A stretch of 64,000 nt of DNA from Haliotis cracherodii (taxonomy: Eukaryota). Numbering within the stretch: position 1 is the stretch's first letter; each line of letters begins with the position of its first letter. The stretch covers positions 11,966,001 to 12,030,000 of the forward strand of contig NW_027266268.1 of assembly GCF_022045235.1 (NCBI RefSeq). The letters are read 5' to 3'. This document shows, piece by piece, positions 338-61,014 of the stretch. The notes below the pieces were generated by a model. It saw only the letters and a program-made list of their open reading frames with translations, was not told the DNA's origin and did not search any database. The translations under genes and the position numbers were made by a program.

Positions 338-1040
338 ATCAGACGAGCACGTAGTCGGCGACACGTTTAAATGGGCAAGATGACTGACAAAACGATTATT
401 TGGACAATGCAAACAATACAATAAATGTCAATGTGATCAATGCAAAATATATTTGTAATTCATTATTTGTTTTAGTTAAATCTATGTTACGTATAATACG
501 AAGTCTTTTTAAAGTTTCATTTGTAACATTTATGTTAGAAATGTGGTGATATTATGAATAAAATTGAAAAAGGAATACCAAAAACAAATCAACACTTAAT
601 CTTAGGTCACATTTAAACGTTAAGCAATATGACTTGTCATCCTACAGAACGGGTGTGCCGACGCCTGGGGCCATAAAACTTTTATTGATTCTCATCACAT
701 GCTTAAAAACGATGTCAGTGTCTACACCGAAACGATGTCGACACAAAATACTGACCCCAAGCCGACCAGTTCTTGTTTGATCCCCTGAATGACGAGCGCC
801 AGGGAGGGTAAGAAGTACAATCTTTTAGCGTCTTTTGGTACATGTACCTCAGGGGGGATGATTTGGAAAGAAGCTTCTCTTATATCTCTTAAATCAACTA
901 ACTAAATGAAGATACGTCGCACGTAGCACCAAGATGGTCTTTTATGTTCCTAGGGTGCATTTTCATTACTTTACCTGTGTTTTCCATTGTATACCTTACC
1001 ACAGTACATACTAGTATATTGCCTAAGAAAATCATCTTAC

Positions 1041-4000
1041 CTGTTTCACCTGCTGGAAATCGAGACCAAATGGATTCCTGTTTCCCCCTCCCTGGGGATT
1101 CTCGTGGCCCACCCCTCGCCATAAGAAGTTGTTTTTGCAGGGATGTGGTACCGAGTCCCCGTTGGGAATGGTGTCTTGGTAATATCGGAATCCGTGAGAA
1201 GCACCGATGATGAAACACAAAGCAATCAGTCTAAAGGAAATAGAAACAAAATATTGACTTGATATATATAAACCTGCTACAATCGACTGAAACATAAATC
1301 GGTTCATATCGAATTTGGCAATAATTTGGCTCAGACTCTTTCAGAAACGTTTGTTTTTGTATTTTGTTTTTGTTCTAGCTCAGTAAGGAAAGAGCTGCCT
1401 GATGCCCCACAAGCAAGTTGGTACAAACAACTCTTGATCTCATGTGCGTCCAATATGCCTCAATTCGCTGTGCAGAGTTTCGTCCCTTACATCCCCCAGG
1501 ATCCACTGATCTCGGCTTCGAATCACGTGTTCATTGTGATTAAGCTTACCATTATTGTTGCTCTTAGAATGAAATAGGTCGTGCACAGAAATCATTAAAC
1601 TATCATTAACTAATGAAGTTTAGGCACAGGAATTCCATTTATGCGTAATTAGTTTTTGGAATTTTCCCACAATTCCTTGTTAACAAACAACACTCGTCAC
1701 TCTCGACACAAACGTTATAAATGCTATTTGCATCACTTCTGACGTTCATTGTTTCTTTTTTTCATAAAGTGTAAATATATAATACAATGTTTTTATACGT
1801 ATCACAGCATATATTGTTTGGTTAAATGACAGTTTAGGTACTCCTAAAACTCCATTATGTCAAACGCCCGTTAGTGTCGGATGGAGTCATCAAAAGATTG
1901 ACACAACCGAAATTAATGACATTTTAGGTAATGGAGGTTTAATGACAAGTTAATGCATCATTGAAGTTTGATACAACCACGTCCTGTGGACCTAGTCCGA
2001 TCCGAAACCGCATATGACACTTAGACAGATAAATGCACGTTTGCTTTGTTATCACAAACCAACCATAACCATTGCATTTTCAGTAAACTACGGTTATAAC
2101 GAACACGCTTATAACGAACTAACGGATATAAAGAACTATTTTTTTAGCCCCGACTTTATGCTGTAGTTATGCTGCATATATGCTTATAACGAATTACGGT
2201 TATAACGAACTAGAATTAGTAGTCTTTGAGTTCGTTATAACCGTAGTTTACTGTACTCGCATTACGAGCCTCGAAAATGAATTCATAATGTTTAATCTTG
2301 TAAACATCTTAATGGTATTCTGGATCAAGCCCGTGGGCACGGATAGCCCAGTAATCTAATTAAAGAGAGTTGTACCCCTCAGACGTTCAGATCCCGGTTC
2401 TCCGAGATTGTCTTTAGGTTTGTCAACAAAACTGAGATTGTGGGTTTTCAGAGAACCATTCATATGACAGTCATCATTATTTTTCCTTTACCAATGGAAT
2501 CTGTTTCGACAGATAGTCGAGACTGATTATTCTCGGACATTGACGTTTTATATTTTCCTATAAGTGTCAAAGGCGTGTTTCACTGCAGGCTTTCCTCCCG
2601 TATTAAGTTGACTCGCCGTGATATAACTGAAACACTGTTCAAAGCGGTATGAAACCAAACTCACTAACTTACCGCTGGAAACGATCCATGTTGGTAGAGG
2701 CAACTCCAGATTGATACTCGACCAGCATAAAACCGCTTTTATACCATACAAAATCCACTTTAGATTGTGACGCATTACCGACTTCATTTTCACGTGAGAG
2801 TGACCGTTGAAATATACGAGGCTGCGCATACAATAAATCAAATAATGTTTTTGATATTAAACGTCTGTTCCGTACTGTGGTCTTATTTAAACCTTATATA
2901 TTTCATTTCAGCGAATCCGATATTTGATTTTAGCTTGGATCAAGAGAGTAGGCCTCAACATTATTTGTACAGTACATGACTGTGGTGTGTCGTCGAACAT
3001 GGATTCCAGCAACGTTTACCGTATCCGGGATAATATACAATGCGATTGTTTGCTTCAGGTTTATATATCATGCCTGCTGTTATCATCAGCAGTGTTAAGT
3101 TATTTAGTGAAAATGTCAACAATGCCATATATTGCAAAATAAAAACACGACGTATGTTGAAGTAGTGCACGAAAAACTGTTAGAAAAAAATGAACAAGTC
3201 AAAATGATTTTTTTTATCTCAACAAGACTTTGTCAGAAAGCCTTTTGAGCACAAATTTCTTTTATTTCGTTTCGTTGCTTTGTTTAACTTCTTTTTAATT
3301 TTGTTTTATTCACCATTCTCTGCTTTCCAAACGTACCAAAATGGCAGCCTCCAGCCAGGAGTGTTGACCATGTGCACGACCACCACCACGTCTTTTGTTT
3401 AAACTTGAATCGGCGTCCATTACGTGATTGAGAAGGGCTTGGTCGCCTTTCGTACAGTGTCATTTTTTGTATACAAAACAGTATCTTCTTTTCGGATTTA
3501 TTTTACCGTACATCTCATTACCACGTTACAGACTGAATAAACGTTATTCGTTACTAAGCCATTATCTGTATATTTTACCAGAGTTAGTGTAACGAGACTA
3601 CAACATATTTGATAAAACAAAATGTTCATATCGTTTGTTGTTTAAAGCCGCACTCAGCAATATTCCACAACAGTCATACTTCTTTCGCAATTCTTATGCT
3701 GGGTGGAATGTCGCGAAATCGTGAAGCTGATAGGTCACAGTCTCTCATGTCGTATAGTTCCGACTCTTCTTCGGATCAAAAGAGACGGTATTTAGTCATA
3801 CTCCAGTGAAGCAGCAACGGCATATCAGCAGGCATAGGAAGTGAACATTTTAATGTTGAACAGCATCACACTCACAGTCCTGGGCTGTCTTCTGGTTTCT
3901 TGCAATTCTTCAACAGCACTGTTCCTGTAAACAATTTCTTTGGCATGATTGATAGAACAGTGCAGGGCAGTGACATCGGGGACAAGCTAGGACAGTAATA

Positions 4001-8357: not shown

Positions 8358-11300
8358 TTACAGACCTAAGGCAAGCACAGCTGCTACAACCATGCCAGAG
8401 ACAACGGAGGATGCTGCACGGGCAGCTGCCGACATCGGATACTTCATTTCAACAGGGTCAGCTGCCTTGTCACATGACCTCAGCGCATGCGCAAATTTAA
8501 TCCTCTGTGGATCGTGTCCGTCAGCGAAATTGAAAAGCAGGAATTCCCCCAATTCCCCTTGAAAACAAGGATGTTTGTTGAGTCGGGCAAGAACAGCTGG
8601 ACATTCCGGTCTGCAGGATCCATAGTGGTTGCAGCTATCCATCACCTAGAACCAATCACGTTTTTGTGTAAACAAACCTACAAAACATTATTGTTTAATA
8701 TATGAAGGCTTTTTTCCCCGTAATCTCATCGGATGACCTGACATCGTTTGTCACGTCAGTGGATGAGGTATATGTCTTGTTTTACTAATCAAACATAGTG
8801 TCATTAAGGCAGACTGACACGTTATTTCACTCGATGGATATATCGATTGTATGTATTCAGATCAATTCAGTATTTCATCACTAAATACATGGCATTAGTG
8901 ACGGGTCTGCAGCGCACCTTGACATGCAGTCAGCATTTCAAAATGTCAATAAAGACAGATACAAAACCATATGACCATATTGAAGATGGGATTCACACAT
9001 CTTGAACACACTAAAAGAGGCATGCATGTTAAGTGTCAGCTTCTTTGGTCTATCAGTGATTTTGCGAGAATATACGAGAGTCAAAGTGCAATGGTTAAAG
9101 CAATGCCAATCTTTTTTTAAATGTCAACAGATGAAACAACACCACTAACCACGCACACGCACACTAAATTTCGGTACATTTTGAACACACCCAAAAAACT
9201 GTGTAAGAAAGAAAGAAAGATAGATAAGATAGAAAGTTTCAGCGTTCCCTATGTTTGAAGTGCAAAGGTCAACATATAAAATATCGCAAATATGGAACAT
9301 AGGTGTTGAGCCCCACTAACATATGATAAAACATTAGGATAATCTTGTTTTATTACCGGTAATATGAGATATAGACAGACAGATATATTTCGTATTTGTG
9401 GCCATGAGGCCAATAGTACGACATTTTTTTGTAAGAAAACTCCTCGTGGAGCACCACTTGTATATACTGATTAGATTGTAGCTAAATAGGTGTACACAGT
9501 TTTATTTATATTCAAAGTCTTATCCTTCTTTCAAATAGCTTATAAATACAAACTGCAAGTCTGAGAAGAATGTGGCTATTTTTGCTGTTCGTTAACTGTA
9601 CAAATTTTCTTTGTGATGGATACGTATAATAATAGTTAGGCAAGTATTTGGTTCTTATATCGTCATATACTGGATATATCAATAAAACATCGTATTCATC
9701 TTCTTGGTAATATTTGCAGAAAGGACACATCGATGTTAAAAGATCATTATCTGAGCCCCACTACTTACATTACATGTACAAAATATCAAAAAAGCATCGG
9801 CGCTGTCGAGACGACGGCCGCCATTTTGTATGAATGGTCCATACAATTTGGAATGTATTTTTTCCATTATAACACTTCGGCTGGTATACTGAAAGACCCT
9901 GTTCACTCACTCACTGGTCGTTATAGTGAGTGAGTGAGTTTGGTTTTACGCCGCTTTTAGCAATATTCCCGCAATATCACGGCGGGGGACACCACAAAAT
10001 GGGTTTCACACATTGTACCCATGTCGGGAATCGAACCCTGGTCTTCGGCGTGTGGTCGTTATAAGCAGATGTTGAATGTCATTGATCCTAAAATATCATC
10101 ATATATTCTTTATCACTAAACTATTAGATAAACAATAACTATATAGCCTTTGATGCTTGTTGCTTACCTCATTCACGATCGCACGCATTTCAGGACTGGT
10201 TAGGTTTTCGAACATTCCGATGTCACATCCGTCAATTATATGATCCTCTTTGGCGAACTTACAGATATCGAAGTTCTTCCACGTCGTGCAAGAGCCGGTC
10301 ATGTTTTGCTTTGGGAAGTAGGAGAAAAGCCCATAGCACATCTCATCATATGAACCTTCTCCATACATGGTTGTACGGGTCTTGGACACAGACCTGTAGA
10401 CGCACGTCGTCTTCAAACTGTCACCCTGTCTCACCTCAATCGGGGATGAGTACCTGAAAGGTCACATTGTATTTTCCTCGATTATCCAGCATATTATTGG
10501 ATCTCCATTCTGTCGTGCTACAAGGACACATACGCCACAACAGCTTCGTTGTTGAAGTGGAGGCATTGGAGATCCTGTCGTCTTCTGCGCACAATTTGTT
10601 GCACAGAGGTGACACAAGTCGAGTACTTATGCTCTGGTTACTGTGACCAATAGGGTGAAATTGGATTGGATGGCTATTTTTACTGTCGTTTCATCTTAGC
10701 CTATATGAGGTAGCTCTGTTCGGAGAAGTACGATGTCTGAGACGGATTGGCATCATATACATGTAGCTCCCAGATAAGATGAACGCGAGTGTTGAAACCT
10801 TAATACTTACACTTTCAGCTGGGGGTTGTCATAGGAGTAAGTGGGGTCGTCGATAACTTTGGCCACCCTCTGACCATTGCGGAACAATTCAACCTGCTCG
10901 TCAAATCCTGCAAGAAATAGTCTTCAAAAAGATTCTGTCTGGAGATATTGATATGATAAACGTACATATGTTAGACAAACTGTAGATGGGCACATGAAAC
11001 GTTAATATGGTTCAATATATTTATTCTCTGAATCGATTCAGTCCCAGTTCAATCTTTACATGAAGTGAGTATTTTCTCAATTCTGTACCTTATACACAAC
11101 TATAAAGTCATATAAACTGGTGATCAAAATAAACTATATCTCTTAGTTGATTTGATCGCAAGTTGGATTTTCAAATGATAGTATCTGAAGTTAGCGATAT
11201 CATGTAATATAAACCATACAGGTGCTTAGTCAATATTTTAAAAAAATCTAAAAGGTTTCTATTTGTTAAAATATAATTTCATTTTAAGCGTTTTATAAAT

Positions 11301-14300
11301 TTAAAAAATGCCATAAAATATACCTGCTGATGGGTACCGTAGACATCTTATCTTTGAAAATCCATAAAGAAATTTGTTTTTTTTCGGCATCAATTTATAA
11401 CATATATATCAATTTACCTTTGTCGTTTTATAAATTTAAAAAATGCCATAAAATATACCTGCTGATGGGTACCGTAGACATCTTATCTTTGAAAATCCAT
11501 AAAGAAATTTGTTTTTTTTCGGCATCAATTTATAACATATATATCAATTTACCTTTGCCGTCATAGAACCAATACATTTTTACACATAATTACCCAGCCA
11601 CATATCACCTTTTACAAGCTGTTGCAGGAATGAGTAATCAAATTGCAAAACAATTATTTCAATTTTCAATTACATTAAAGAACGACAACAACATCGGTAT
11701 ACTTTCTTTTGCCCCACAGTTTATACTGACCATCTTCATCCCAACTGAATCCTTTCCTCGGGTACGGGTATGAATAATGAGAAATACAACTGACTCTGAA
11801 TGGTCATGGTTGACATATTCTAGAGATACCGATGCATCGGTATTAGTTGGTTGGTTGGTTGGTTTGTTGTTTAACCCCGCCCTCAGCCATATTCCAGCTA
11901 TATGATGGCGGTCTGTTAATAATCGAGTCTGGACCAGACAATCCATTGATTAATATCATGAGCATCGATCCACGCAATTGGGATCGATGACAAGCATCAA
12001 CCAAGCCAGCGAGCCTGACCACCCGATCCCGCTGGTCGCCTCTTACGACAAGAATAGTCGCCTTTTCACGGCAAGCATGGGTTATGAAGACATATTCTAC
12101 CCCGGATCTTCACGGGTCTCATCGGTAAAAGACACATCTTACCTAGTATTAAAAGACACATCTTACCTAGATAATGCATATGGCTAAGACCAGATGTTAT
12201 GTAGATATTTCCCTTCATTATTTTGTTGGTGCACTCTTCTGTGCATGTCGACTCAAACGTGGACCGCTTAGCACCTGGTGGAATCTCCAGATACTGTTGG
12301 CCGGTAGCTAAGAATCCGGCATCGTACTTTCTCAGTTTTGGCGTGTAATATAAGGTCAAACCAGAACTGTCAACATAGTCACTTCTCAACTCAGGGTTAG
12401 TCCAATGAAACTGAAACATGATAAATAAAGTTGGAATGGGGATAGGTCTAGAGCATCCAAACTGTTATTACGACCCTCGCCGTGAACCTTACGAAGCAGT
12501 ATTAAGCTTACCTCTGCACTGCGTTCCTCATACAACTAGTGCATTGACCAGAAGAACTATTTACCTGCAAAACCATTTTCTTTGGGCCAGTGCGACCTAT
12601 GCGATATCCTGCCTCTTCATATTCACATGTTCCATCCAGCCCCAGGGTCCAGAGCCCAAGAACTTGAGAGCACCCCTTCTGGGACATGTAACAGGGCGTG
12701 GCATGGTCTGTTATGTCAGCTGTCAACAATGAAACATATCAGCGGCTATCCCTTTGTTAAAGATAATGTATACAAGTTATCATTGGTTTAAAGAAATCAC
12801 GAATTTATTGTGATAACATTTGTCGCACAAGGGAGATTGTTCTATTTGTAACCATGAATGCAACGTTTTTGGTGAAGACACTCCTTACATAATTATCATG
12901 GCATGCTTGATAACTGTGTTAGTATCTACACCGAAGCGTCTCATTGATCGTATATCCACAGAACCATCCAACTGGTTTATCATACCAACTTTTAATGCCA
13001 CTCAAGGAAGATATATTTGTCGGTCCTAAAAACAGGCAAACCCTGTGATTGCGATTTCGATTTAATCGACAGACATATTGGTTTGATTTTTCATGTGTGT
13101 ATATGTTGCGATAAGGATAGACCAATAATTCTCTTTTGATAACGTAAACATAAATTTACCATCATTATCGCATCCGAAGAGGACGATGTGGTGCATGACG
13201 TTGGTGTTGTTGATTTCTGGCTTATTTGCAATCAGGTGGTAGTCCTGTGACATGTCGATGTACTTGCTGACGTCGAAGGGCATGCAGTAGTAGTTGGTCT
13301 CAGTCGGAGGCACCCGTGTTGGTGGATATCTCAGAGTGAAGCTCTTCACCTCTGGAAAACGGAAGTACTGTAACGTTAGTAGGGAACGTACATATATATC
13401 TTAAGCATTGCATCGGTGTGGCGATTCAGCATGGTCTTCCTCATAATTCGATTTCCTCTTGGAGTCAGTATCACCTTTTGTTCACTCCTGTTAAGCAACA
13501 TTTGCCAGAAGTCGATAACTGACAAGAGGAGGAAAGAGGAATATGATAGTTGTCATTCTTTTGCCCATTTCTAATAATTTCAGCAAACCTTTCCGAAACA
13601 TTAAAATGTGACATGTCCACGAGGCCAATTAGCAACAGTGATAATGGCTAGTTGTCAGTTTTTACACAAATGATAATTTCAACTATAAACTTTGCAGTGT
13701 GTCAAACTGGGCGCATCTCCTGCCTCTTTGGTGAGTCAAGGTAGATGAGGTTAAGTGTTCAACTTACCAGGAGCTTTTGTGGCGTTGCATACAAAATCGC
13801 CAGCTGTACAAGACACCCAGTCGTTCTTGGCCGTGCATTTAGGACTTCCCCAGGGGTCACAGATACCTGAAGTGAGAGACGCTTGGGTGAGGCCATGAAG
13901 GTTCAAAGTCATATGCATCTAATTATGATATTCAGTATATCAGAAAACGTGACGAGAGATGAAAACATCGCTTTGAATAGTATTTCAGCTCTATCGTGGC
14001 GTGTCAGCTTAATGTGAAAGGAAAGCCCAAATGTGAAAATCATGAACACGTGTACTGTGCTGACAGACCAAGAATCTGGCGAACTTAGATTCGATCAGCA
14101 GTGGTGGACACGAGGATTTAACGTCACGAGGAACCGTTTCGAAACGAAATTAGTGACACAATCGGGGGGATTATTATCCGGGATTAGTGTGCTCAATTAA
14201 AGTGGCATTAGTCTTTACACACGATTCATCGTTAATATTGACGATGTTTTGGTACGGTGCTGTCTTCATGTCGTGCTTGGTCGTGTTGTATATGTCAACC

Positions 14301-17300
14301 ACTTGTCGTGCCCTTCGGTTTAGCTGCTGAAGTTGCAATTGAAGTAGTTAGGTTGAGGATGTCTACTGGTATTACTTTGTGTTCACTGCGTGAATTAGTT
14401 TGCTAGTCCTTTAACGACATACGTGTAGTTCAGGTATCGCCATTATCACGCCACACAGTAAGGTACCATGGTTGGTTGGTCGGTTTGTTGTTTAAAGCCG
14501 CACTCATCAATATTCCAGCATTATGACGGCGTTCTGTGAATAATCGAGTCTGGACCAGAAAATCCAGTGATTAATATCATGAGCATCGATCCACGCAATT
14601 GGGTTCGATGACATGCATCAACCACGTCAGCGAGCCTGTCCACCCAATTCCGTTAGTCGCCTTTTACGACAAGCATGGTCACCTTTTACAGCAAGCATGG
14701 GTTGCTAAGACCTATTCTGACCCGGAATCTTCACGGGTCCAGTAACCATGGACGAATCAAATAGCGAATGGTACGGCGTACGTTATCTAACAAATTCCTT
14801 CACATTGTACGACAGGTCACAAATTGCTAACAGCTAAAGTGAATGAGAGAAGCACCACGACGTAGTCGTTCTATGGCTCAGTTGACGCAGATTCAAATAA
14901 ACTCTCTACCATGACAACAGACCTGAACCATATGAGTTCTAAACGATAAGACAATGCAGTCTGTTTGCGTCGGAAAGTGAAATATTTTCATTAATGTTCC
15001 GTAAACGTCTTTTTCACTCCTTGCATGGATCTTGACAGCAGAGCATTGATATACCCAGTTCTTTATATAAGATAACTACGCGATAAATCGCAAAGAACGA
15101 TGAAGAACGAAATGTTGTTTATTTCACGATAAAACATTGTTCGATCATGACGTCATTTTTGGAGATTCGAACATGCACTCGCAACTTGATGACGTCGTAA
15201 GTTGTTCCCAGTTGATGTAGCTGGGCAATGCAGATAAACGCATTAGCCGAACGATCGCATTCAAAGATGGGAGAGATATGAGAAACGGTTTAGGAAGAAA
15301 AGTTTAAGATAAGCGACGTGAAAATTGTGAGAATGTCCTGGAAATACCAAACCTAACCCCCCTGCTCATAAATGAGATTTGTCCGACATTGCCGAGGTAT
15401 TAGTATATTCAGGGAGTCAACAGTAAATACGGGTAAATATTTTTAAAGCGTCGATATTTTATGAACGTCCTTAAAGAGACCGTACATAATGTCTTAAAAT
15501 GGTTTGAATCAAAGTGGATTAAAGTGATTTATTTTTCAGAATTAATTGGAATTGTATAACCATGTTATTTCAGCCTGTTTAGTCTTACCTTGTGTCCTTG
15601 AATGTAACTAATTGACATGCCTCCACTAATATGAATTTCCATTTTCCTGTCACACGACACAACGATTATGATGCATCATTTCAAAGCATTATTTTTGTGT
15701 TAAAAGACTGTATTTTACACTATAACATTTCGTAAGAACGTTCACAGCTATATGTAACACTGTGACGGAACAGGTGAATATACCTGGATGTGTGATGTTC
15801 TTGGTCCTCGAGGGGAAACTGCCCGGATGCCACACACAGTCTGGATCTCCTAGCTCCTGACCATTGGTCATCCCGTCCCCATCAGAATCCTTCTGGCACA
15901 GTTCTGTAGTCCACTGGAACGAAATATTGACAAGCCACCTTTTACAAGAATGCCATTAAGGGTCACATTAAGGACATAACATTACATTATTTACGAGTGA
16001 GTGAGTGAGTTGGGTTTAACGCCGCTTTTAACAGTATTCAAGTTATATCACGGCGTGTCAGCTTCATGTGGGAGGAAAGCCCGAAGTGATGCAGGTCTCA
16101 GACGTTTACCACTTCGCTGAAACCCACGAGCACGGGTATGGTGCTTACAAACCTAGAACCATAATCGGGGAGAACCGGGATTCAAACCCACAATCGTTGG
16201 TTCCTGGCGTGTCCAAGGGACGCAACTCTGCACAGCGAATCGCGGCGCCTTGGACGACTGGGCCACCCGTTCATCATTTCTAGTGAAAACGTACGTCCTT
16301 TGGAAACAGACCCAGCTTTGCAGCCATGGATGGGTCTTAGGTTCACCACTATCAACCTTATGTATACCTACGGCATATTCGTCTTGACTTTTCTTTATGA
16401 TTCTATGTTTAACTGACAAAAAAGTTGAGATTTCCATTTTGTTTTACAACATCTCGTTTTGTACTTCTCATTTAAAACATAACTCTAATATCAGTTATAT
16501 AAAACCTTGGAAATCCGATTGATTTTTCACTTTTGAATCATGTCACATGTGTAAGATGTAAACGAATTCGTTTGTACACAAAGCAGATTAATATTAAATA
16601 TAGAAAAGTGGTGTTCTCTACTGAAACCAATGTAGGGACGTCACAATCACATGCTCAGTCGAAACCAACACAACATTGTGACATACCAGTTTAGTCAATG
16701 ATCTCCATGTGGGGTTTAATGATAAATGCTTACAACGACGAGTGAGTAGTAAAGTGGGCCATTGAGCATTACACTGTGCAGATAAGCCAATGTCCTCCGT
16801 TAAAAACACGCTCCGATCCGGTCGAGAAAACAGTTACCTAATTAAAGGATACCCTGGTTTGTATCGGTTTGTATCAATAGCCAGAGAAGCAATGCAAACA
16901 ACACAACGTATCTTTCACCCGTTTGTTCAGATTCACCTGAGGGTAATGGTTGAATCCTATGGATATGATCAAACACAACCTTTGTGAAGGAGGAAATGGT
17001 TTTAATACCACATTCAACTGTACTTCAGATACATTACGGCACGTCAGTTTAATGTAGGATTCAAGTCAAAAGTGTCACCGGTCCTTTTTGTTTATCACTT
17101 TAGTGTAACCAACGACCAAGGTATGCTGCAGACAGACCACGGACCATGCCTTGAGATAATATGGTCAACTCCATGCGGCTTAACTCTGCGCAGAGTACCA
17201 TTCGTATTCGTATGAAATCATTTGTTCATGAACTCTTCAACCTTACCTTCCGAGAGCCAATGGCATACATTCGTGCTTTGCATATTGTTAGCTTAGTATT

Positions 17301-18190
17301 TCGGAACAGTACAGAACAGATCTTTCTTCGTATAGTCTGGCCATGAGGCCAATAGTACAGATGATTGGATAATACTTGAGAAAATTTTGAATTTGTAAAA
17401 AAAAATTAATATAAAGAACTAGCTGGAATAAAATGTTATTGTCATTTGTTTTGACCAGCGATGCAAATTTGTGCATGGTAGGATATTCATAATTATATAA
17501 AGGCAAATATCTTGACCTTAAGTTAGTATAAGCTACACATATCAATAGTGTATGGTATTCATCACAATCTTCTTTACAGAACGCATAGACGTTCTGTATT
17601 TATGTATTTTAAAATCATTCAAACACCATCAGCTAAACTGTGTTACAGCTCTTCTTAAATTTACTGTCTTAATCGATGATAGATATTTCTCAGTTGTAGT
17701 AAGGATTTGTAGGTGGAATATTCACTAATTTAAAGTATTTTTGTATTTCCTCGATACATCTTTCACGTCTAAACGTCTAAGCACGGCATGGCTCTTTGGT
17801 GTTCTCCAACATCAAGATGACCTACTGTGATTTTCCAAAACATCATGTCAACGACATTAAATGTTACTCAATGTCAATATCATAGACCGAACAGAATCAT
17901 TATCAGCATTGTCAACTATTCGCTTGTGTGGATAACTCGATGTTTTCGATGGTTCACATGACTTCGCGTGGTTTTCAAGTACATACAAAGAAAATCATCC
18001 TACCTGTTTCACCTGCTGGAAATCGAGACCAAATGGATTCCTGTCTCCCCCACCCTGGGGATTCTTGTGCCCCACCCCCCGCCATAAGAAGTTGATCTTG
18101 CATGGGTGTGGTACCGCGTCCCCGTTGGGTATTGTGTCTTGGAAATGTCGGTATCCGTACGAAACACCAATGAAGAAACAAACAAGTAAT
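8358..18190 (-). CDS. Temptin-domain / copper type II ascorbate-dependent monooxygenase (DBH/MOXD1/tyramine beta-hydroxylase-like) fusion protein, paralog B, ~560 aa. Exons 18190-18004, 15913-15784, 13866-13768, 13351-13160, 12719-12565, 12410-12167, 10907-10811, 10453-10168, 8645-8358; start exon uncertain
   Basis: All introns are GT-AG with consistent phases (0,1,1,1,0,1,2,0), giving one open frame to TAA at 8358. Temptin motifs: IPNG..VPHPC..W.GVGH....GGG.RNPFGLDF and WTTELCQKDSDGDGMTNGQELGDPDCVW. Monooxygenase motifs: TNYYCM, VMHHIVLFGC, LQFHWTNP, DSSGLTLYYT, SHMHYLG, GDSLKTTCVY, GEGSYDEMCY. The C-terminus is hydrophobic. The start is either the in-frame ATG at 18255 or an upstream phase-2 exon such as 19124-19111. 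Confidence 0.9.
9395..9730 (-). mobile_element. LINE (non-LTR retrotransposon) 3' fragment
   Basis: Translation CPFCKYYQEDEYDVLLIYPVYDDIRTKYLP resembles the C-terminal CxxC..EDEYH.LL.C region of LINE ORF2. The downstream motif TGGCCATGAGGCCAATAGTAC is shared with 17338-17358. Confidence 0.65.
9926..10052 (-). mobile_element. SINE family C (tRNA-derived), 5'-truncated
   Basis: B box GGTTCGATTCCC on the minus strand, (ACTC)n tail, and an 11-bp target-site duplication TGGTCGTTATA (9915-9925 / 10053-10063). Confidence 0.8.
11289..11557. repeat. Apparently perfect 135-bp tandem duplication (2 copies) in a monooxygenase intron
   Basis: CGTTTTATAAATTTAAAAAATGCC...AATTTACCTTTG starts at 11289 and again at 11424. 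Confidence 0.9.
11846..12118 (-). mobile_element. SINE-like family B
   Basis: GACCCGTGAAGATCCGGG start, CTTGTCGTAAGAGGCGAC core, GCTGGAATAT.GCTGAG.GCGG.GTTAAACAACAAAC tail. Probable TSD CATCGGTA (11835-11842 / 12120-12127). Confidence 0.8.
14471..14740 (-). mobile_element. SINE-like family B
   Basis: Colinear with 11846-12118 and flanked by ACCATGG on both sides. Confidence 0.8.
15995..16270 (-). mobile_element. SINE family A, near full length
   Basis: Colinear and highly similar to 55924-56206. Confidence 0.8.
17330..17760 (-). mobile_element. LINE 3' fragment, decayed
   Basis: Minus-strand translation CKEDCDEYHTLLICVAYTNLRSRYLP matches the 9.5-kb fragment, with the same TGGCCATGAGGCCAATA tail motif. 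Confidence 0.6.
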
Positions 18191-20353
18191 CTAAAACAGA
18201 TAACAAAGAAAACGTCAAGAGTAGGCGCAAGTGATATTGCAAGATTAATTCGCATGTGTCATCAAGTCAACTTTGCAAAGAATAAGATACTGAATAATAT
18301 ATTTACTCTATCTTGGCAAATATCACACAGCTGCTGAGGCATAAAGTTTCACAATCATCTTCCTCGGAGGTCGTAAAATCAAACCTAGGAACATTACTGT
18401 GTAGTAAAAACATGAAGTTTTGTCTTCTACATGATGGTCAGTGTTACAAATATACATTTCAATTGTGCAATTATAGATCATTCAGTGCCTATATCAAGTG
18501 AAATATATCTAATGTGTGAAACAAGTAAAACACAATTTTCAAGTATTGAAAATACATGTTCTGCTATTGTAGTGGCCAGCACGTAATGAAATATGCCAGT
18601 GTCCACCCAGTGAATGGGTACTCGATAGGATGAGAGGGTTATGTGGCTGTTAACCTTCAAGTGCCTCCAAGGCAACCTGGGCTGTATACTCCCTAGGGAG
18701 CTGAGAATGAATTTCTGATCCATTGACCGTGGTAATAATATACAGCCGCTGAGGATCAACCCAAGTTTGAAATCAGGATCTTTCTAGAGACATTATATAT
18801 AATATTTTCATTGACATTATGCGTGCTCTATACACAGATAACGTCCTGTGCATGTATTCATTTCCTGACCATCAATCTAATGTCTTAAACAATGTTAAGT
18901 ATTCTATTGAGTATACACGACATTTCTTTTCATTAATGAACAAAAGTACCCTGTTGATCTCAAATATCAGAATTTTGTGTGGTATTTATAAAGGCCCGAA
19001 ACAAGTGAGTGAGTTACAATGTAGAATCATATCGGCAGAATTTCTGCCATATCGTGTCATGGTCCCGTACAAATCAACTTATAACGCTTAAAACACATAT
19101 TAATACATACCTGTGACGTGACATAAACAACTGGACAAAAGAAAGTTACACTTAAAAATTGGATTTGTCCTTTAAGGTAACAAATGTTATCGTAGCATTT
19201 GGAGCCTCAAAACAGTCGCCGAACAATGTAAACTGAAAACTGCAAGACCCAACCTTGATACCCTATCAAATTCATCACCACTGAATAACAATTCGTGTTT
19301 GTGTCGTGTTTAGCCATCTTAAGGCATGGGCGTATACTTTCATTTGACTGCAATGTTATGGGACTGAAAAATATAATGTTAACACAATAGCAGTATTATT
19401 GTGCATACAAATGAAAAAGACATCACATTTACATATTGGCAAATACCAGTAAAAGTTACTTACATCTTTAAAGATTCCATGTTTCTGTGAGCAATACCGA
19501 TTTAGAAGTGAGCGGGAACTCGTATAACCTCTTTTTATCTTAACACAAGCCCCTCCCAATTGTGAAATTGTAACTGATAAAAATCCACGTGATGATGACT
19601 GTAGAGATAAGAGTATGACCAGATGATCCTCATACCTTTGTTTTGTACCCCTATGTCGACAAACATAGTAACGATGATACGAGTCGTCATTCCAAGTATT
19701 TTCAATTTATATGTTGAGCATACTCGAGTCATCACTACCAAACACCATTCGACATTATAATACCTTCATCACACCTGACAGGTGAATGAATGTTTTCAAA
19801 TTTAAGTCTGATGACCTTTATTTAAAAATAACATATCATGCACGAGTATTAATAAGGATTTATGTGTCTCGTGGCTGGTCGTTGTGAGTGGATGAGTCAT
19901 CGGATTCCCCAAACGTCCAGAGCAACTTGGAGATGTCAGTATGTTGATGTATGTTGTGGAGCGAGGAGATCTCACCTTCAACTCTTTATCCATATTTTGC
20001 AATATCTTCACTGGTGACCTGTTTAACTGACGAGTTTATGGTCAAGCAGTACATATTATGCTCAACAATGGAATTAGGTGTCTGTAACATGCAAGGTGAA
20101 TAAGAATGGCAGATATTTTACATTGATATGAATCTGTATAGACACAGGGTATTACAATAACTTTCAGTCCTGTAAGTAATAGTAATCGGATCGTTTGTTT
20201 GAGGTTATTTTGTTTACAACAATATTCCAATAGTTTGTGATTTACAACAAGTTCAATAACATAAGTATAGACAGAAAAAAAAAAAGGAGCCTCACTATTT
20301 GTCATGGGTAAGCGTATGGTCTTTATGTTGATCCAGTATGCATTTGTGAATGT

Positions 20354-58460: not shown

Positions 58461-61014
<2,554 letters not shown>

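Follow-up and report, generated by a model that had tools for sequence, protein, structure and literature searches.

This study concerns a 64,000-nt stretch of the Haliotis cracherodii genome (positions 11966001-12030000 of contig C5 in the assembly labelled G000; hereafter the window, to which plain coordinates refer) and a nine-exon gene on its minus strand that joins a temptin domain to a two-domain copper monooxygenase. The temptin and monooxygenase exons are one gene and are carried on one transcript. Taken as a whole, the gene is very probably best explained as a member, both intact and transcribed, of the lophotrochozoan 'Temptin/mono-oxygenase hybrid' family, and as the ortholog of Haliotis rubra XP_046576525.1. 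The fusion architecture is already known, having been published in 2009 (PMC2762978) and being widely annotated in molluscs, and the finding adds no new kind of gene. Here, we describe the gene, its copper core and its paralogs, and weigh what such a protein might do.

Transcript evidence and gene structure

Contigs from four sequencing runs (X1, X2, X4 and X8), belonging to four studies and carrying four organism labels, were mapped onto window positions 12300-18299. Their joints lie at 12410/12565, 12719/13160, 13351/13768, 13866/15784 (within the stated slack) and 15913/18004, which are the predicted splice sites of exons 1 to 6, and every skipped part has CT..AC ends, as GT-AG introns on the minus strand do. 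A single contig of 1076 nt (X1 record 1) runs from exon 1 through exon 6, so that temptin and monooxygenase exons are found together on one mRNA. The runs returned by the search contained ~0.11-0.13 of the sampled words of a 10-kb stretch, about the expectation from exons alone. For the junctions from exon 6 to exon 9, the evidence consists of canonical sites, consistent phase and a gap-free fit to the 563-residue H. rubra protein (XP_046576525.1, here P0225), on which exon 6 covers residues 261-341, exon 7 343-373, exon 8 375-469 and exon 9 470-563.

Reading the reverse complement with a script check, we found an AG acceptor or GT donor at every border, consistent phases throughout, and, from an ATG at 18255, a reading frame of 1743 nt (580 codons) with no internal stop. 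An earlier note, made from the sequence alone, had proposed these nine phase-consistent exons and a common mRNA for both parts, and it is borne out on both counts. The motifs it quoted are likewise all present: DSDGDGMTNGQE, VMHHIV, Q/FHW (divided by the junction of exons 5 and 6), SHMH, DEMC and the tail SAAARAASSVVSGMVVAAVLALGL before the stop. The domain order is Temptin_C, a four-Cys linker, Cu2_monooxygen, Cu2_monoox_C, a Cys-rich extension and a hydrophobic C-terminal tail. The features are as follows, with a slash marking a splice joint.

Exon 1: 18004..18190 (18255 if the ATG is taken), minus strand; signal-peptide end (LLVCFFIGVSYG), then the N-terminal half of the temptin domain; matches Temptin_C over profile 3-51 (E 2e-14); joint 15913/18004 in four runs.
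Exon 2: 15784..15913, minus strand; C-terminal half of the temptin domain, including the calcium-type loop DSDGDGMTNGQELGDPDC; matches Temptin_C over profile 51-98 (E 3e-20); contig joints on both sides; all family-conserved residues kept.
Exon 3: 13768..13866, minus strand; four-Cys linker; joints 13351/13768 and 13866/15784 in contigs.
Exon 4: 13160..13351, minus strand; opens the CuH domain and carries its HH ligand pair (VMHHIV); Cu2_monooxygen E 9e-9; joint 12719/13160.
Exon 5: 12565..12719, minus strand; central part of the CuH domain, bearing three conserved Cys; joints on both sides; collinear with relatives.
Exon 6: 12167..12410, minus strand; third CuH ligand (FHW), inter-domain region and CuM HxH (SHMH); Cu2_monoox_C match.
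Exon 7: 10811..10907, minus strand; strands of the CuM domain (FDEQVELFRNGQ...); canonical splice sites and phase; 87% identity to P0225 residues 343-373.
Exon 8: 10168..10453, minus strand; carries the Met ligand of the CuM site (DEMC) and begins the Cys-rich extension; Cu2_monoox_C E 3e-10; 90% identical to P0225 residues 375-469.
Exon 9: 8358..8645, minus strand; Cys-rich C-terminal domain, SAAARAASS, 15-residue hydrophobic tail and stop (TAA at 8358).
Candidate first coding exon: 19111..19124, minus strand; M-S-R-H-R with the last Arg codon split, donor AG/gtatgt.
First temptin exon of paralog B: 1041..1243, minus strand; tblastn match of 66% identity over window 1295-1041, passing upstream of the aligned acceptor.

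At the donor of exon 6, a 22-nt tandem duplication (window 12120-12170, minus strand) holds ctaggtaagatgtgtctttta twice and creates a second in-frame GT donor. Its use was rejected, as it would add eight residues after HMHYLG, where both the family consensus and P0225 have none. Intron 6 holds an exact tandem duplication of ~135 bp (window 11296-11566), visible as duplicated translations of open reading frames. Interspersed repeats lie in introns 2 and 1 (window 14500-14710 and 15995-16270, respectively) and just after exon 6 (12000-12123), and these three stretches have an enormous summed contig depth in the RNA-type runs. The 12000-12123 element has at least 40 copies genome-wide at 87-95% identity and probably belongs to a family resembling short interspersed nuclear elements. 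Further away, window 58713-58857 is a run of 145 N, which marks either a gap in the assembly or masked sequence.

A temptin domain and a copper core with all six ligands

A Pfam scan made exon by exon recovered the domains that the earlier note had read by eye. Temptin_C (PF24784, cut-off 27 bits) matches exon 1 with 54 bits (profile 3-51) and exon 2 with 73 bits (profile 51-98), both over the cut-off, while Cu2_monooxygen (PF01082) matches exon 4 (9e-9) and Cu2_monoox_C (PF03712) matches exon 6 (1e-6) and exon 8 (3e-10). The DSDGDG loop of exon 2 also gave a sub-threshold match to a thrombospondin-type-3 repeat.

The copper ligands were placed by exon-wise HMMER alignments to the peptidylglycine alpha-hydroxylating monooxygenase (PHM) and dopamine beta-hydroxylase (DBH) chains of the PDB. 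VMHH of exon 4 aligns with the HH pair in HHMLLFGC of PHM. Exon 6 matches human DBH (4ZEL, E 4e-8) by sequence and not PHM, placing the FHW His at chain position 294 and SHMH at 373/375, and the Met of DEMC in exon 8 falls on DBH chain position 448 and also aligns with DEMC of PHM. These chain positions correspond, by a constant offset of +39, to H333, H412/H414 and M487 of the six DBH ligands, which we take to be H262, H263, H333, H412, H414 and M487. All six ligands listed in the earlier note are thus found at PHM and DBH ligand positions.

Conservation across the family agrees with this placement. In an alignment of 24 full-length sequences, to which the exons of this gene were added as fragments, conservation is at least 90% at the six ligand positions and at the core cysteines. 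Among the columns that at least 85% of the sequences conserve, the gene departs from three only, by conservative changes: C, C, W, G and C in exon 5 are all kept, as are five family-conserved Cys in exon 9, whose frame is open to the TAA. The four Cys of the exon 3 linker fall in columns that 21-22 of the 24 sequences conserve. For the fold, an AlphaFold2 model of a scallop relative (P0002) served as family proxy (pLDDT, the predicted local distance difference test, 85.7; pTM, the predicted template modelling score, 0.72). It superposes on DBH 4ZEL with Z 34.3 and a root-mean-square deviation of 2.2 Å over 309 residues, and on PHM with Z ~25-29 (best 28.6); the region after the core is helical and Cys-rich. 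The catalytic core is predicted from these alignments to be intact and of the DBH type, with all six copper ligands.

Three groups of known proteins resemble parts of this gene product. With human DBH (4ZEL), MOXD1, MOXD2 and tyramine beta-hydroxylase (TBH), it shares the two-domain copper core with six aligned ligands, presumed entry into the secretory pathway and a Cys-rich C-terminal region; a DOMON-type relative, P0149, has a hydrophobic tail at its end as well. It differs from this group in that a temptin domain and a four-Cys linker stand in place of the N-terminal DOMON domain, and in that identity over the core is only ~25-28%. PHM (1PHM/1OPM) shares the core fold (by way of the proxy, Z 25-29) and the HH..H and HxH..M ligand pattern, but, unlike the abalone protein, has no N-terminal accessory domain. 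Two residues before HxH, the abalone protein has Leu (SGLSHMH), where PHM has an Arg, which we take to be R240 and which presumably binds the peptide carboxylate. Aplysia temptin, a water-borne protein pheromone, and other free temptins belong to the same Temptin_C Pfam family and share with the abalone domain a DSDxD-type calcium loop that is cited as conserved (PMC10075465). A free temptin is a small, secreted, stand-alone protein, whereas the abalone domain is spliced to monooxygenase exons and forms the N-terminal module of a 563-residue enzyme with a hydrophobic C-terminal tail.

Temptin in place of DOMON

An N-terminal DOMON domain defines DBH, TBH and MOXD1. In a six-frame hidden Markov model scan of the whole 1.18-Gb assembly with PF03351 (E<=1), 32 matches were found, none of them within the window (C5:11966001-12030000), in line with the absence of DOMON claimed by the earlier note. 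The nearest matches lie at C5:7.28-7.30 Mb. Canonical genes combining DOMON and Cu2_monooxygen are located at C5:7.27-7.30 Mb and C19:1.48-1.52 Mb and, since these loci carry Cu2_monooxygen exons, the genome also has ordinary DOMON-type enzymes. Because the N-terminus here is temptin and DOMON is absent from the window, names such as 'TBH-like' or 'DBH-like' do not denote membership of those enzyme families. Elsewhere, a dense array of DOMON-matching exons with a repeat of ~2.5 kb (G000:C34:39546898-39677833) has no monooxygenase matches nearby and may be a cluster of multi-DOMON or ferric-chelate-reductase-like genes.

That temptin takes the place of DOMON, as the earlier note inferred, is right as architecture and was published by Takahashi et al. 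in 2009 (PMC2762978), who described proteins with an N-terminal temptin, two monooxygenase domains and no DOMON. Their examples were Aplysia AAY42041, an expressed sequence tag from Pomatoceros and a Lottia sequence, and they regarded the 'Temptin/mono-oxygenase hybrid gene' as a lophotrochozoan synapomorphy. The abalone gene has in common with their hybrid the N-terminal temptin with conserved disulfide cysteines and a central loop, PF01082 and PF03712, the lack of DOMON and its place in a mollusc genome. It shows no difference in kind; the abalone copy belongs to a set of at least 22 paralogs, with a place in a tandem array, and an expansion to this number is not described in that paper.

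A large family of mollusc relatives

The best match to the gene is H. rubra P0225, which is named 'tyramine beta-hydroxylase-like' and onto which all nine exons map contiguously at 73-93% identity per exon; the nine exons also map in order onto scallop P0002. An all-against-all protein search with exon 8 returned full-length relatives of 523-724 residues, and among those with an N-terminal domain, 20 of the 20 scanned carry Temptin_C together with both monooxygenase domains. With P0002 as query, a word search returned 327 proteins (E<=1e-20) from bivalves and gastropods, four Haliotis species included; among the matches listed, the same three Pfam domains occur in 120 of 120. The earlier note's remark that similar fusions may already be annotated in molluscs was therefore right and understated, given the 2009 paper and these 327 relatives. 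Their database names are 'tyramine/dopamine beta-hydroxylase-like' and, sometimes, 'peptidyl-glycine alpha-amidating monooxygenase-like' or 'DOMON domain-containing protein'.

In the literature, we found no paper that tests the function of the temptin-monooxygenase family and no biochemical characterisation of it. Work on mantle transcriptomes lists 'DBH-like' and 'Temptin' among shell-related genes (PMC11464482), and a 2026 preprint reports expression of DBH-like paralogs in the mussel larval gut (bioRxiv 10.64898/2026.08.17.745212).

Paralogs and tandem copies

The number of such loci in the genome was counted by searching it with exon 6 and with Temptin_C and pairing the matches. At least 22 loci have a temptin exon and a monooxygenase exon on one strand, the former 2.3-16.6 kb upstream of the latter; 21 of these loci are on C5 and one on C4. 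On C5, a contig of 41.9 Mb, clusters lie near 12.08-12.18, 17.07-17.24, 19.33 and 38.36-38.42 Mb. Free-temptin genes or clusters are found apart from these, on C80 (52.87 Mb) and C1. We found no paper describing an expansion of such size.

The gene studied here heads a tandem array that extends, with copies B and C, over G000:C5:11945604-11967295. Copy B lies directly downstream of the gene, its remaining part lying beyond the start of the window, and has all nine exons at C5:11967295-11959856, with an amino-acid identity of 66% in exon 1 and 76-95% in exons 2-9. Copy C has exons 1-5 only in the 30 kb examined and may be truncated or have diverged 3′ exons. Transcripts of a second copy appear to be present among the contigs as well: X4 record 13 and X8 record 19 form a second spliced set on exons 5 and 6 (12586-12720 and 12309-12413), with 14-15 mismatches, joints at 12413/12586 and 12720/13170 and extra letters between. 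These are probably transcripts of a paralog, in which case more than one copy is expressed.

The end of exon 1 is unusually similar between neighbours. Comparing window 17990-18100 with 1025-1135 (minus strand), near-identity to copy B extends over the last ~100 nt of exon 1 into the first few bases of intron 1, whereas the remainder of exon 1 is ~80% identical. This pattern suggests local gene conversion between the tandem copies. One 17-mer at the end of exon 1 is also present in paralog B.

The two ends of the protein

The 5′ end of the gene probably lies upstream of exon 1. One contig (X2 record 11) follows the genome from 18004 and departs from it exactly at 18190, with 24 more 5′ letters that do not fit; the acceptor at this position is therefore used. 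The acceptor (ttttag/A) is kept in paralog B, and in the DNA alignment similarity decays upstream of it. The ATG at 18255 was rejected as the start on account of this contig exit, of the decay of paralog similarity and of an over-long leader (34 residues, longer than in any relative inspected), and it is probably intronic. Exon 1 thus does begin in the end of a signal peptide, as the earlier note had it, with a further small 5′ exon expected beyond the extent given there.

In a scan of the 12 kb upstream of exon 1, the top-scoring ATG-to-donor candidate in the right phase is 19124-19111. The first five codons probably lie in this mini-exon, ~0.9 kb upstream. Joined to LLVCFFIGVSYG, it would give a signal peptide of 17 residues and a product of 563 residues, the length of P0225, whose N-terminus has a similar layout (MERST, then ILLACFIIGVSHG/YRHYQD). 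A similarity search against the region upstream of paralog B for a 5′ exon returned repeats only; the analogous candidate there, M-D-R-F-Q-R at 2689-2673, directly adjoins a repeat and is weaker. A word search with exon 1 alone gave six short fragments, none from H. cracherodii, and did not inform the N-terminus.

At its other end, the protein closes with SAAARAASS, the 15-residue hydrophobic stretch VVSGMVVAAVLALGL and the stop. Similar tails occur in orthologs or paralogs from H. rubra, H. asinina and H. rufescens, where SSVVSG or SSVVAG/SSAVSG is followed by a hydrophobic C-terminus. The ends of 22 temptin-type relatives were compared: in 14 the protein closes on hydrophobic residues with no cytoplasmic stretch, in two (P0088 and P0093) a charged cytoplasmic tail comes after a transmembrane segment, and the other six are tail-less. 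The hydrophobic tail is compatible with a glycosylphosphatidylinositol (GPI) signal, and the GPI-like layout seen in the earlier note is, by eye, kept in the Haliotis orthologs and most relatives.

Proposed function and alternative explanations

From these features, a course of action can be outlined for the protein. It would enter the secretory pathway through a 17-residue signal peptide, the first five codons of which would come from the upstream mini-exon. Its C-terminal tail could then be exchanged for a GPI anchor, leaving the enzyme on the cell's outer face or, within vesicles, on the lumenal side. There, as DBH and PHM do, it would hydroxylate a C-H bond by means of two uncoupled copper sites, with O2 and a reductant, ascorbate for instance. 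The disulfide-stabilised temptin domain with its calcium loop would take the N-terminal accessory place that DOMON has in DBH, MOXD1 and TBH, and would probably serve in partner binding or substrate targeting.

We think that an extracellular substrate, such as a small amine or phenol or a component of matrix or mucus, is likelier than a part in classical noradrenaline or octopamine synthesis, because there are at least 22 paralogs, mostly on one chromosome, because the genome has separate DOMON-type genes and because the PHM-type Arg before HxH is lacking. As a tentative extension, one that we put forward as possible though not probable, the temptin-monooxygenases might not be neurotransmitter enzymes but an expanded group of extracellular hydroxylases, surface-tethered or secreted, in which the calcium-binding temptin domain would dock the different paralogs onto different targets (for example a water-borne cue, mucus, or shell or nacre matrix) that the copper core would then hydroxylate. 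The roles that the earlier note suggested, in amine-type signals or in modifying secreted matrix, are likewise conjectural, as is surface tethering.

Several points weigh against the reading of the gene as an intact, transcribed and surface-anchored family member. The RNA nature of the runs is a guess, although intron-less contigs joined at exact splice sites argue for RNA. The 5′ mini-exon is a candidate picked by phase and donor score, and both the signal-peptide and GPI calls were made by inspection. Anchoring differs within the family, given the two transmembrane and cytoplasmic forms and the six tail-less ones among 22 relatives, and no enzymatic, localisation or GPI data were found for any family member. 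Furthermore, the fold is that predicted for scallop P0002, which is ~50% identical to this gene.

The alternatives differ in which part of the protein they question. That the fusion is an artefact, made by merging a separate temptin gene with a neighbouring monooxygenase gene, has a superficial basis in the free temptin genes of this genome (C80:52.87 Mb and C1) and in Mya arenaria loci that some depositors have split into 'TEMPT-like' and 'MOXD1-like' proteins. It is refuted by the contig joints across temptin and monooxygenase exons, in particular by the 1076-nt contig with exact GT-AG joints from exon 1 to exon 6 and by the same joints in four studies; the exon order is moreover repeated at 22 loci in the genome and the architecture is common to hundreds of relatives, so that we give this explanation practically no credence. 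Another view concerns the tail, which could be a tail-type transmembrane anchor or simply a retained hydrophobic C-terminus and not a signal for GPI attachment. P0088 and P0093, with their transmembrane segments and charged cytoplasmic tails, show that the former exists in the family, and the GPI call was made by eye. Yet the tail of the abalone protein is only ~15 residues long and ends the protein without cytoplasmic residues, the run of small residues before it (SAAARAASS) suits an omega site, and the layout is conserved in Haliotis orthologs and most relatives. We therefore consider a tail of another kind improbable, though it is the alternative that we take most seriously.

The remaining two alternatives concern activity. 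A genuine dopamine or tyramine beta-hydroxylase, making noradrenaline or octopamine in neurons, would suit a core that is nearest to human DBH in sequence (exon 6, E 4e-8) and, for the proxy P0002, in fold (Z 34.3), as well as the NCBI names of the relatives ('tyramine beta-hydroxylase-like' or 'dopamine beta-hydroxylase-like') and the origin of the Aplysia founder sequence in a neuronal transcriptome (PMC2762978). These names are homology transfers, however, and the window lacks the DOMON domain by which DBH, TBH and MOXD1 are defined, whereas separate genes combining DOMON and monooxygenase domains occur elsewhere in this genome. A set of at least 22 paralogs is also far beyond the need of transmitter synthesis, and an orthology study in bivalves distinguishes one DBH from several 'DBH-like' paralogs in the larval gut, their temptin content being unstated (bioRxiv 10.64898/2026.08.17.745212). 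All in all, a role in transmitter synthesis appears unlikely. Slightly less likely still is a non-catalytic secreted or matrix protein, with the copper domains as scaffold and temptin as a pheromone-like or shell-matrix binding module. Free temptin is indeed a component of a protein pheromone (PMC10075465) and has also been linked to biomineralisation (PMC10075465; a reference in PMC11464482), but the six copper ligands and core cysteines are kept here and in at least 90% of the 24 family members, a conservation that argues for selection on catalysis, and the nacre protein entry bearing on a scaffold role is cited without domain content.

Implications for the family

The preferred reading, that of an intact and transcribed temptin-monooxygenase, bears first on annotation. 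Database names mislead for a protein without DOMON, and at least one transcriptome paper (PMC5685644, given here as an example) has read such names as evidence of noradrenaline synthesis. With every catalytic residue conserved, the family is a tractable orphan enzyme, and the abalone expansion, for its size and its clustering on a single chromosome, is perhaps worth a comparative note. If the temptin-monooxygenases were extracellular hydroxylases that temptin docks onto different targets, an orphan, MOXD-like branch of the copper monooxygenases would gain its first physiological role.

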